From NCBI GenBank assembly GCA_965644295.1, contig CBFFRP010000019.1:186001-250000 (forward strand): a stretch of 64,000 bases of DNA, written 5' to 3'. Below, in pieces: positions 20,029-56,464 of the stretch. The notes below the pieces were generated by a model, which saw only the letters and a list, made by a program, of their open reading frames with translations, made no database searches and was not told the DNA's origin. The position numbers were made by a program, and so were the translations under genes. The DNA comes from Paraphysomonas bandaiensis (Eukaryota > Protista > Chrysophyceae). Position 1 is the stretch's first letter, and each line of letters opens with the position of its first letter.

Positions 20029-21343
20029 CTATAGTTCGGGCACTGTCAAAACTTCCGCACCATGTTCAGTAATAAGCACCTCATGTTCAAACTGGGACGC
20101 TCTAAAAATCATATTCAAGTCAATGACGAAATAGTAACAATATGTTTCAACTCACATGCTGCCATCCTGAGTGAATACACTCCAATTGTCTGCCGGCGAG
20201 ACGCCTATTTCTTTTCGCCCCTGTGACAACACAACACGTCATACATTCGAAAATTATTATTAGTTCTGCAGGACACTCACAACTGTGAATATCGGTTCGA
20301 TCGTAAATATCATATTGGGTACCATCTCCTGTCTGTTATTGTTCTTGTAATGCAGGATCTATTCACAAGAAAATCAGAAAAAGAATAGGAATAGCATGGG
20401 CAGTGTCCTTACCAGTGGCGGCATGTGTAGCGTCTTACCAAGTCCGTGACCACAAAAATCTTCGACAGAACTGTATCCATTACTATCCGCCACTTTCTGT
20501 GGAGCCAGCGCATCATACAAATAAATTTTAAAAGCCGTACTCCTACCTGAATAGTGGATCCTATTTCCGTTATACATCTGATATGCACGTGTCAGTACCA
20601 CAAAGTCATTTCATTTGAGATTATCTTACTTTCCTGGACCACAAATGCTTATTGCATCTTCTAATGCCTTAAGGTTAATATCCAACAGCTGCCGTTTCCA
20701 CTCCCGGTCAGACTTTTGGATTTTGTCTTCACCAATGATGACAGTCTTACAGTTGTCTCCGTGATACCCCCTATAAAACACTGACACGTCGATGGACAGC
20801 ACATCTCCATCGGCCAAAACGTCATCAGTATTCGGTATACCGTGACATGCGATATTATTGACGGACGTGCAAATAGACTTTGGGAAACCATAATAGTTAA
20901 GAGGAGAAGGAAATGCACCTTTTCGGATGATTTCTTCGTGTGCAAGTCGATCTACATCGTCAGTTGTCATGCCTGCCTCTGCTACGGAGCATGCATAGTC
21001 TAGAATGTATCTGGCAATGAGAGCTTCGCAGCGTTCAAGATAATATCAGATATACTGGGTGACAGATGAAAGCATATATATACCTGACTCCCGCATATAC
21101 TGGATCTCGTCATTCTTAAATATATAAGTATATCTACAGACTCAAGTCAGGAAGAGTAACAGATAATAATACATATGCATACGGTGGCGCTTGTTGTGGG
21201 CTGCCAGTGTCAGCATACTCTGTTCTGGTAATATGCTGAGGGACATATCGAAAACTTGCCCGAGATAGCTGTCTCGACTGGAATTTCAAACTAGCAGTTC
21301 GTGTTCCATATTTCTGCCCGCAACATTTCATTATAGATTGCAT
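20029..21343 (-). CDS. Methionine aminopeptidase type 1, probably organellar (MAP1D-like), multi-exon
   Basis: PSPLNYYGFPKSICTSVN..CHGIP, IDVSVF..GYHGD, FCGHGLG, FTIEPI, SQFEHEVLIT; N-terminal transit-like extension. Confidence 0.93.
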
Positions 21344-49119: not shown

Positions 49120-49672
49120 TCAAAAACAGTTTAATTGGAGAAATACATTTGCACAAGGCAATGGCTTTAACCCTTCCAGGGTATACCAATATATTCATTA
49201 AACTAGCACCCCATATAGAGTGTATAGAGAGTATCATACATACAACTCTCATAATATTTTTTTTTTATATTTGAATTTTGTATCTCTTGATTAGCTGCTG
49301 CTCCTGATGTTATGAGTAGTGACTTGAATACTGTGATAATACCGCTGTAGTTCAGTGGTTTACAGAATCCAAAAGCGCATTGAAAATGGGTTTATTTTTT
49401 GTAAAAGTATTGATTTTTATGTCAACAAGTTTAGTTGTGAACCGAAAATCAGCATTAAAGTCAGTCATATCTACAGAGTAGGTATGATATGCAGCGAATA
49501 TTCCACACATATGCAGAGTATGTTACAGTAATATTAACACTGCTGTCCTGTTGTTGAGTGATCTTTGCATTACTTCTATACTCTCTTACTAATCATCCAC
49601 TATACTACTAGTGGATATCTATACAATTACTATATACAGTATCCACTGATACTTCACTATCATTTCTATAAC

Positions 49673-50995
49673 ATGGAAGCCACTACAGGACAGCCGGTAT
49701 CTTCATTAACACGAGCAGGTTTTGATCCTTTCTGTGGATCGAATCAAGACGGAGAATTCGAGTCAATAGAGGAGTTTGAAAAATACATCAGTGACAAATA
49801 CGGAAGCGCATCAGAGATCCCCAATATGAATGGATGGATATTTCAAGAAGTTGATTTTACCAATGCTAAGGATTATTTTCTGGACTTGCCGTTTGACGGG
49901 GCTAGTTTCTGGGGGTGTGTGTTTCCCCCAGGAGTCACAGATAATGACATAAGATCTCGGGGCGCTAAACTTGTAACTTCGAATCCGGCCAAGCTTCCAT
50001 TCAAACCGATGCGCGCATTTCTATATTCCCAGGAAGAATTAGCTGCAAGTGACTCAGACATATATAAATACTGGCTTGAGAATTCGAATTCATTTGAGTC
50101 ACAGCTTTTTTATTCTATCCATGATTTTTCCATTATGGATGCATTGATGGATTATGCGGAGGGTAAGTCATTTGTCGCAATTTGTGGAGGACATGCCATG
50201 CGCCGATCCGATGTCATGTATGGTCAACTGATGGAACTCGGAAACAAGATTGCCCATGCAGGCTTTATTTGCTGTACGGGTGGTGGACCGGGAGCAATGG
50301 AGGCTAGTAATTTGGGCTCATATTTGGCAGGCATTCAGCACGCGAAGCGGATGAAAACACGATCTGAACAAGACGTCAGTTCAGAGCAGGATGATGATCA
50401 CAGCAGTGAATCTATCCTCTCACGGGCGAGAGAGCTTATCCAGACCCACCCTAGCCCACCAGATGAACCAGAATATAAGAACCCTAAACCGGCGCAGGCT
50501 GTACTTGATGCCTTAGGTCCTTCTACTTGCTACTCGCCGTCTCTTGGTATACCGACATGGCGATATGGTCATGAGCCTCCAAACCTCTTCACAGCCTATC
50601 ATGCGAAATTTTTCCAAAATTCACTTCGAGAAGCTGTTCTCTTAGAGTTGTGCTATGGTGGACTCATCATCACTCCTGGAGGGCCTGGGACGATGCAAGA
50701 GATCTTCCAAGCTGCTTGTTGAAATGCTTACTCCAAGGAAGGACATGACTATCCAATGGTGTTCTTTGGAGTGGAATTCTGGAGAGAAAACGGGGTTTGG
50801 GATTTAGTACAGAAACAAGCTCGGAAATACTCATATACACGAATGTTGTTGTTGTCAGATAGTGTTGACGAGATCATGGACCACCTTGTGCGATGTGCTG
50901 ATGAAAAGGGACTTTCCCGGATCAGTGATTTTTCTGAGCTTTGTAATCCCTATTGGTTTTCAAAGTCATCAACGTGCTCATCCTGTAGAGGATGA
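49673..50995 (+). CDS. LOG-family (Rossmann-fold nucleotide phosphoribohydrolase-like) protein with one in-frame TGA at 50720-50722
   Basis: GGHAMRR, TGGGPGAMEASNLG, SLGIPTWRYGHEPPN, KFFQNSLRE, PGGPGTMQEIFQ. The frame continues past the TGA as NAY..PMVFFGVEFW. Intronless. Confidence 0.82.
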
Positions 50996-55349: not shown

Positions 55350-55602
55350 GGGATGTATTTTTCGACCTAGTCAATTTGGGGGAATTTCCTAGTCACACCA
55401 AAATTGGTGTAAAAACCTAGTCAAAAGGTTCGAAAACCTAGTCATTAAATAATTAGGGATGTATATGCGAGTACAATTCATGACTAGGTTTAATACTATA
55501 ATTGGCTAGGTTGAGTCATTTATTGCTTTGACTAGGTTTTTACACCAATTTTGGAGTGACTAGGAAAGTCCACCAAATTGACTAGGTTGAATAATATATC
55601 CC
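55350..55602. mobile_element. MITE (253 bp) of the same MULE family as 37351-39097
   Basis: GGG..CCC termini, long inverted arms of CCTAGTCA repeats, flanks TATATTACA / TATATTATA(TTACA). Confidence 0.9.
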
Positions 55603-55873
55603 TATATTATATTACATTTTCTATGAACACTTTAGATATACGTTGCCAAAGTGGCAGATTGGATTTCATCTGGTATTATGATGTATTTTCATTTAGATAT
55701 ATGCAGTTCGTTGTTGTATTACTTCGTACTATACTTCGTGTGGTATGTGGTAGTAGTAAACATAGCATATCTCAACCGAAATACAAACATTTTGTGTATA
55801 ATCAAGAAGACCGCGATTAATATTATTATAAGTATAATGTTCAATTAATATTTGCATAATGAATAAATAACTT

Positions 55874-55940
55874 TTGAAAATCAAAGGATGTCAGAAATAC
55901 CATGGGTAGTTTAGCATGGTTTCGTCATTCTCCTTTTCAA
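55874..55940 (-). promoter_or_regulatory. SECIS element (canonical, type I-like)
   Basis: aaagga-ga-AUGAC-GAAACCAUG-cu-AAA-cuacc-CAUGGUAUUUC-UGAC-a-uccuuu: helix I, UGAN/NGAN quartet, helix II, and AAA 11 nt above the core. Confidence 0.88.
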
Positions 55941-55966
55941 CTATAAAGTAATTGAGTCCGCGAGAG

Positions 55967-56020
55967 AAAATTTTCAGACAACGCAATCACAACGATATTC
56001 GCGAAGTCATCATTCATTTT
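55967..56020 (-). promoter_or_regulatory. Second SECIS-like hairpin (non-canonical apex)
   Basis: aaaau-ga-AUGAU-GACUUCGCG-AA-uaucguuguga-UUGCGUUGUC-UGAA-a-auuuu; the AA is only 9 nt above the core. Confidence 0.5.
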
Positions 56021-56047
56021 ACAAGTGCGACATTAATACTACTGAGT

Positions 56048-56077
56048 GGAGGGTGTGGTACAGAGTCTACACCCTCC
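56048..56077 (-). promoter_or_regulatory. Stem-loop 7 nt downstream of the UGA (Sec redefinition element-like)
   Basis: GGAGGGUGU-12 nt-ACACCCUCC, a perfect 9-bp stem. Confidence 0.6.
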
Positions 56078-56464
56078 GCGGGCCTCAGGACTTTGGTGCC
56101 GGTTTAGGGTAGTCCGACAGACTCTTTATGTTTTTCCTCGGACGTCAGGAACCCTGGGACGCACCCGAGGATGGCTACAGACGTACGACTTATATCAACA
56201 CAGCGAAAATTCAAATCATACCTGGGATGAAGCAGTAGAGTTTGGCTGACTACGATAGTACCCCACTCCTAATATAATTCCCGCCATTGCCGCAGCAGGA
56301 AATCCTCCTAAAAAGTACGCAACAGCTATAACAACAAGGATACTCCACTGCGGAACAACTTGTCCAAATATAACTACATCAGATGAGCTGGGTGTAGTAG
56401 AATTGGATTCATTATTCGTTGGCGCATTATCTGGAACTATGGCGCCATTAACAATCTTTACCAT
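56067..56464 (-). CDS. Small membrane selenoprotein (about 116 aa, two in-frame UGA), FAM241/DUF4605-like with a SelK/SelS-like tail
   Basis: Exon 1 56464-56222, 47-nt GT-AG intron, exon 2 56174-56067 = PSSGASQGS-U-RPRKNIKSLSDYPKPAPKS-U-GPRRV-TAG; SECIS downstream. Confidence 0.82.

Follow-up and report, generated by a model that had tools for sequence, protein, structure and literature searches.

A two-exon gene with two in-frame UGA codons

The window, by which we mean the whole 64-kb stretch of DNA that was analysed, carries on its minus strand a two-exon gene that runs from an ATG at 56464-56462 to a TAG at 56069-56067 and is interrupted by a 47-nt intron. Translation gives a product of 116 residues with one predicted membrane span and two in-frame UGAs, here called UGA1 and UGA2. 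Exon 1 (56222-56464, minus strand, 81 codons) encodes the conserved N-terminus MVKIVNG, a Ser-rich spacer and one long hydrophobic span. The phase 0 intron (56175-56221, minus strand, GT..AG) follows a conserved Gln codon, and the coding part of exon 2 (56067-56174, minus strand) reads PSSGASQGS-U-RPRKNIKSLSDYPKPAPKS-U-GPRRV-stop, in which the motif 3' of UGA1 is conserved in the family.

A 90-aa protein from the MMETSP transcriptome, P0001, corresponds to exon 1 plus exon 2 as far as UGA1 with 99% identity; the translation of exon 1 is likewise 99% identical to it and aligns with the family. P0001 spans the exon junction, passing from ...SSQ directly into PSSGASQGS, and because it matches exon 1 joined to exon 2, both the splice and the expression of the gene are real. 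The intron was found at the same place in L006, L012, L013, L014 and L015. The gene is present in one copy in the 62.5-Mb assembly, and the adjoining next gene is convergent. The assembly encodes SepSecS (426 bits) and tRNA-Sec (69.6 bits, anticodon TCA); UGA is therefore readable as selenocysteine (Sec) in this genome. On comparative evidence, the stretch is probably the 3' end of the mRNA for a small membrane selenoprotein with two SECIS-like elements and a stem-loop.

Downstream of the gene, the intergenic interval 55401-55632 contains repeated words of the AAAUUGGUGUA type on both strands, apparently a short repeat of dispersed or tandem kind. The matches of these repeats to ToxI and a Caenorhabditis snoRNA model were weak and at chance level.

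Conservation around the two UGA codons

Orthologue DNA came from nine loci (L005, L006, L007, L008, L011, L012, L013, L014 and L015), making ten genes with that of the window. UGA2 (56085-56087, minus strand), six codons before the stop, is predicted to be the family-wide Sec codon: TGA stood at this position in 9/9 orthologue loci and so in all ten genes, followed by about five codons, G-P-x-x-V (C-P-P-P-V in L011), and then by TAG or TAA.

UGA1 (56145-56147, minus strand), the codon at which P0001 ends, is a candidate Sec codon specific to one clade. In L006 and L012 a TGA likewise lay exactly 60 nt before UGA2; L005 had TCA (Ser) in its place. The peptide between the two UGAs was conserved, L005 with its Ser at the UGA1 site included, and RPR.N[IV][KR] stood right after UGA1. 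Since this motif is conserved, translation must pass UGA1. It seems very improbable that UGA1 is mainly a real stop, with a main product of 90 residues and a downstream frame that is occasionally read, or reached when an alternative acceptor (AAG/AGT) 51 nt on bypasses the codon. The transcript-derived open reading frame of P0001 does end at UGA1, and both the window gene and L006 have an in-phase AG past their NIK codons; L012, however, has no in-phase alternative acceptor. The same codon was also kept in three species whose proteins are 46-52% identical, the residues that follow it are conserved as protein, and the frame leads on into the family-wide Sec motif, all of which argues for passage through UGA1. 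A conserved stem after UGA1 was considered and rejected: hairpins were present there, but their offsets differed.

A vicinal Cys-Sec pair was seen in most family members. Cys adjoined Sec in six loci (L007, L008, L011 and L013-L015), preceding it as C-U-G except in L011, which has U-C instead. The window gene and the three relatives closest to it had Ser before Sec. In place of the Cys, three of the four members of this Ser-Sec clade have another Sec 20 codons upstream, and L005 has neither the Cys nor the second Sec.

Protein family and candidate identities

Family searches used exon 1 or the database protein P0001 as query. An exhaustive HMMER search returned 20 matches at E≤0.001, comprising the query, two long repetitive proteins and 17 further small proteins; a profile search added six members, bringing the family to about 24 small proteins. 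Members share the start MV[KR]IVNG, a single hydrophobic span that contains GG...G.GY, a linker rich in Ser and a Ser/Gly-rich tail. The C-terminal motif, [NR][IV][KRM]x[IVM][SG]D[YL]PKP, leads into the predicted Sec site (...SD[YL]PKP..[CS]-U-G-P-x-x-V). All members that reach this motif end 1-5 residues past it, at the position of UGA2, the column at which fourteen database proteins stop. The remaining members continue as "QV...", a read-through of the unspliced intron at the same Gln, and every entry of the family in these databases is either truncated at the Sec codon or runs into the unspliced intron.

The members scanned had no Pfam domain, and several known families were considered and set aside. 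A SELENOP homologue was ruled out, the exhaustive HMMER search having returned only small membrane proteins and the two repetitive proteins. Selenoprotein K/G (PF10961, SelK_SelG) was ruled out as well: its HMM matched no family member scanned, and hhalign of the family profile against the tail of the genome's own SelK gave a probability of 2.4%. SelK of Dictyostelium discoideum was also considered and rejected. For FAM241/DUF4605 (PF15378), the HMM reached E 0.57 in one of 18 members and E 0.32 in one of ten, and the profile search contained no DUF4605 protein; the ESM Atlas gave a FAM241/DUF4605 lead at 0.81 and nothing more. The two-Sec membrane selenoprotein MSP (Lobanov et al. 2007) is a multi-span protein with a VGSUCWP motif (PMC2375036), and its published alignment (PMC2375036, supplement 2) shared neither motif nor architecture with this family.

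The genome has a SelK-like gene of its own (L003 1613-1774, plus strand, which is G000:C373, near 142034-142120). Its N-terminal exon scored 22 bits against PF10961, and its second exon ends ...GPNIRSMKPKGDMHCAAGG (...AAGG) before the stop. Its N-I-R-S-M stretch resembles N-I-K-S-L in the gene under study.

This appears to be a widespread protist membrane selenoprotein family that occurs only in the Sec form, with a C-U-G or S-U-G tail. A literature search found no description of the family as a selenoprotein, which is not proof of novelty, and a metagenome search for related loci gave no confirmed locus.

Two SECIS-like hairpins downstream of the stop codon

Two hairpins lie 3' of the TAG on the strand of the UGA-containing gene, in a genome with Sec machinery, and would be placed in the 3' UTR. 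The distal hairpin (55879-55940, minus strand) has the form-1 SECIS pattern, with AUGA at 55928-55925, a further 12 nt, AAA at 55912-55910 in a 10-nt loop, and UGA at 55893-55891. The proximal hairpin (55962-56025, minus strand) has AUGA at 56013-56010, AA at 55999-55998 and UGA at 55976-55974. Both contain a kink-turn core ([A/G]UGA opposite GA) and a helix I below the internal loop, of about 10 pairs in the distal hairpin and of five A-U pairs (AAAAU/AUUUU) in the proximal one.

The path from helix II to an unpaired A is as expected in the distal hairpin. The proximal hairpin has its AA 10 nt after the AUGA, a tandem U.U mismatch in helix II (GAC-UU-CG over CG-UU-GUC), and a first A that can pair in the minimum-energy fold, in which there was no clearly unpaired AA; with the core held unpaired, no SECIS fold formed. 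Consecutive helix-II mismatches are penalised in the grading of SECISearch3 (PMC3753652).

The Rfam SECIS models (SECIS_1) gave no match at E≤10 to either hairpin and none in the genome. They also missed all eleven orthologous SECIS, so their blank on the window is uninformative, and family models were built instead. Eleven hairpins with [AG]UGA...GA cores were taken from the nine orthologue loci and aligned on their cores; the second elements of L006 and L012 among them were chosen by eye prior to modelling. The alignment supported helices I and II, with 71.6% of cells paired vs 48.7% in shuffles. Double changes were seen in 15 of 15 pairs, and a slide control peaked at 0, slid registers reaching 32-51%. 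Covariation among the orthologous UTRs, a check that the first-pass annotation had proposed, thus supported the SECIS fold.

Two covariance models were made. R1 was built from the eleven orthologue hairpins with the window left out, and R2 solely from the seven one-UGA orthologues by a model-guided alignment (MAFFT misaligned the 3' halves). R1 was run on 128 kb, that is, on both strands of the 64-kb window: the distal hairpin ranked first (22.1 bits) and the proximal one third (18.2 bits), with another match at 19.8 bits and the next at 13.2 bits. Under R2 both hairpins scored 23.1 bits and were the joint top matches on both strands of the window, so that the proximal hairpin was not clearly weaker than the distal one. 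Among the orthologues, R2 gave 30.3 bits for L012a, 22.8 for L006a, 12.7 for L012b and 9.3 for L006b. Both window hairpins therefore scored as SECIS (18.2-23.1 bits) under models derived from orthologues only. A genome-wide R1 scan returned nothing at E≤10; 150 of 13877 candidates were scored in it, and hence it gave no calibration.

These results bear on three statements of the first-pass annotation. The distal hairpin that it called a canonical SECIS is present, with a form-1 core, and is among the top matches of the family models. The proximal SECIS-like hairpin that it described, with an AUGA/UGA core and an AAAAU/AUUUU helix I, is present, both models using the same AUGA. It had placed the proximal AA at 9 nt; the recount gave the 10 nt reported above.

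The one further match above 17 bits in the window, at 21034-21125 (minus strand, AUGACGAG core; 19.8 bits under R1, 19.2 under R2), lies inside an apparent methionine aminopeptidase (MetAP) intron on the same strand and is probably a false positive. A gene of the LOG family at about 49565-50995 (plus strand) has an in-frame TGA (50720-50722) right after a Cys codon, ...EIFQAAC-TGA-NAYSKEGHDYPMVFFGVEFW.... No intron signal was found at this TGA, and the sequence downstream had no match to either family SECIS model.

In other two-Sec proteins, one SECIS serves both UGAs. The same could hold here, with only one element at work for both codons and the proximal hairpin either a degenerate copy or similar to a SECIS by chance; we regard this as rather unlikely. 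The tandem U.U mismatch, the weak all-A-U helix I and the failure to form a SECIS fold under core constraints speak for it, as does an R1 score below that of the probable false positive in the MetAP intron (18.2 vs 19.8 bits), and in human Sep15 the upstream SECIS has been reported as non-functional (PMC2874816). The proximal hairpin nevertheless ties with the distal one as the best R2 match in 128 kb, and L006 and L012 likewise have two elements. The probability of a chance match in the proximal position is about 0.001, an estimate that takes about one chance match of at least 18 bits per 128 kb, the right strand, and the interval of roughly 130 nt that separates the distal SECIS from the stop. 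We infer that the proximal hairpin works as a SECIS.

SECIS number and UGA number

Two UGAs were accompanied by two SECIS-like elements in all three two-UGA genes (the window gene, L006 and L012), and one UGA by exactly one SECIS match in 7/7 of the others (L005, L007, L008, L011, L013, L014 and L015). The second elements of L006 and L012 scored just 9.3 and 12.7 bits under R2, which is unbiased with respect to them. In L005, the 326 nt downstream of its SECIS scored at most 5.1 bits, and a relic of a second SECIS around GUGACGAA was rejected at 2.3 bits.

The best tree nested L005 within the two-UGA group, as (L006,(L005,L012)), with supports of 92/85 and 96/83. Such nesting would mean joint loss of UGA1 and the second SECIS. 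A single two-UGA clade remained acceptable under the AU test (p 0.114), and the independent contrasts number only two or three; the correlated-loss reading is unproven because a single origin of the two-UGA state is not rejected. The correlation between SECIS number and UGA number is no more than suggestive, for under the phylogeny a single event would suffice. We therefore put forward only tentatively, and with some doubt, that SECIS number tracks Sec-codon number, a second UGA and a second SECIS having arisen jointly and then disappeared jointly from the L005 lineage (TGA to TCA). Each UGA would then need, or benefit from, its own SECIS and, if this is true, even two UGAs 60 nt apart would be decoded better with one SECIS each.

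A stem-loop after the C-terminal UGA

UGA2 is followed by a stem-loop at 56048-56077 (minus strand), whose arms GGAGGGUGU (56077-56069) and ACACCCUCC (56056-56048) form 9 perfect bp around a 12-nt loop. The 5' arm begins 7 nt past UGA2 (56087-56085) and overlaps the TAG stop (56069-56067). An earlier description of this stem as perfect, 9 bp long, 7 nt past the second UGA and containing the TAG was right about the stem and its spacing, but only the U of the TAG is paired: its A and G open the loop. Among the window's 28 perfect hairpins with 9 bp or more, this stem alone has at least 5 G/C per arm. Taken by itself, its energy was unexceptional (z -0.46 to -1.07).

Counterparts were found in five orthologues: L008 (12 pairs, spacer 7 nt, loop 10 nt), L007 (14 pairs, spacer 5 nt, loop 6 nt), L005 (9 pairs plus an inner helix, spacer 9 nt, loop 28 nt), L006 (9 pairs, spacer 10 nt, loop 44 nt) and L012 (11 pairs, spacer 8 nt, loop 42 nt). 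The stem was absent from L011, L013, L014 and L015 (4/10 genes). In the six genes that have it, its register is fixed relative to the stop codon, positions -4 to 0 being paired in five or six of them. Compensatory exchanges (GC/CG/AU/UA) occurred at seven stem positions (-8, -7, -6, -5, -1, +2 and +3), among them the third positions of the Val and stop codons. Against dinucleotide shuffles, the window stem had a minimum-energy z of -0.46, and the five orthologues had values of -2.1, -1.8, -3.6, -3.2 and -5.4; the Stouffer z over all ten genes was -3.9. A cruder positional test on stem length gave a modest result (Fisher p 0.015).

This conservation and covariation in 6/10 genes argues that the stem-loop is a selected structure in part of the family, one-UGA members included. 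Because one-UGA relatives have it too, the stem belongs to the C-terminal UGA and is no multi-Sec adaptation. The first-pass annotation had proposed a miniature, independently evolved multi-Sec architecture of which the stem was one part. The pairing of two SECIS with two UGAs recurs in L006 and L012, in a protein unrelated to SELENOP, and to that extent the proposal stands; the stem, however, is not specific to multi-Sec genes.

Where present, the stem-loop begins 5-10 nt 3' of the C-terminal UGA, and the true stop is buried in it. Most probably it would act locally while UGA2 is in the ribosomal A site, in the manner of SRE-type stems, or it may set the spacing to the SECIS. We infer a role for the stem-loop in Sec decoding, and its spacing of 5-10 nt from the UGA is that of known recoding stimulators such as the SELENON SRE (PMC6844570). 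The register of the stem is moreover tied to the codons directly after the UGA. It is possible, although we lean against it, that the stem-loop is conserved without stimulating Sec insertion, serving as a SECIS-positioning spacer, in tuning termination at the buried stop or in mRNA stability, as the stem-loops of SelS, SelK and SelO might. Four orthologues manage without the stem, and loop length ranges from 6 to 44 nt. In cells, the proximal stem-loop of mammalian SelS was found to give no active stimulus to Sec insertion; its deletion raised recoding, and an unstructured spacer could substitute for it (PMC6844570).

Comparison with known selenoprotein systems

At the level of the protein, selenoprotein K offers a partial likeness. 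It shares with this family an N-terminus of the MV.I.NG.V type, one membrane span, a short motif like N-I-[KR] and U-G near the C-terminus. Unlike selenoprotein K, the family has no match to PF10961, and a separate SelK-like gene exists in the same genome.

Among known elements, the stem comes closest to the SELENON SRE and to the SelS, SelK and SelO proximal stem-loops. As in SELENON, where the distance is about 6 nt, a stem-loop with compensatory changes lies a few nt 3' of a Sec UGA, at 7 nt in the window gene. In contrast to SELENON, the UGA here is six codons from the end, so that the stem takes in the final sense codons and the stop itself and reaches into the 3' UTR. With the mRNAs of SelS, SelK and SelO (PMC6844570, PMC3628699) the gene has in common a Sec near the C-terminus and a conserved hairpin that lies directly 3' of the UGA, ahead of the SECIS. 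SelS and SelK, too, are small membrane proteins that have a single span and a disordered Gly/Ser/Pro/Arg tail, but SelS, SelK and SelO have no detectable sequence homology to this family.

The two-SECIS arrangement has been called unique to SELENOP (PMC5133445, PMC8266573). Beyond SELENOP, paired SECIS have been reported from human Sep15 and predicted in Ciona SelW1, each with a single Sec (PMC2874816). Like SELENOP, the gene described here has more than one in-frame Sec codon and two tandem 3' SECIS-like hairpins, of which one is form 1 and the other has an additional upper helix. Unlike SELENOP, it encodes an unrelated 116-residue membrane protein without a thioredoxin-like or His-rich domain, and it has only two UGAs, 60 nt apart, in a protist family that otherwise has a single UGA and a single SECIS per gene.

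To our knowledge, the relation between SECIS number and UGA number has been studied almost only in SELENOP, a long mRNA with 10 or more UGAs. The present family would provide a minimal natural contrast, in which orthologous mRNAs of about 0.6 kb have either a single UGA with a single SECIS or two of each. Because these mRNAs are short and differ in their UGA and SECIS counts, two questions are open to testing in short reporters: whether each UGA needs its own SECIS, and what role post-UGA stems play at C-terminal Sec codons.
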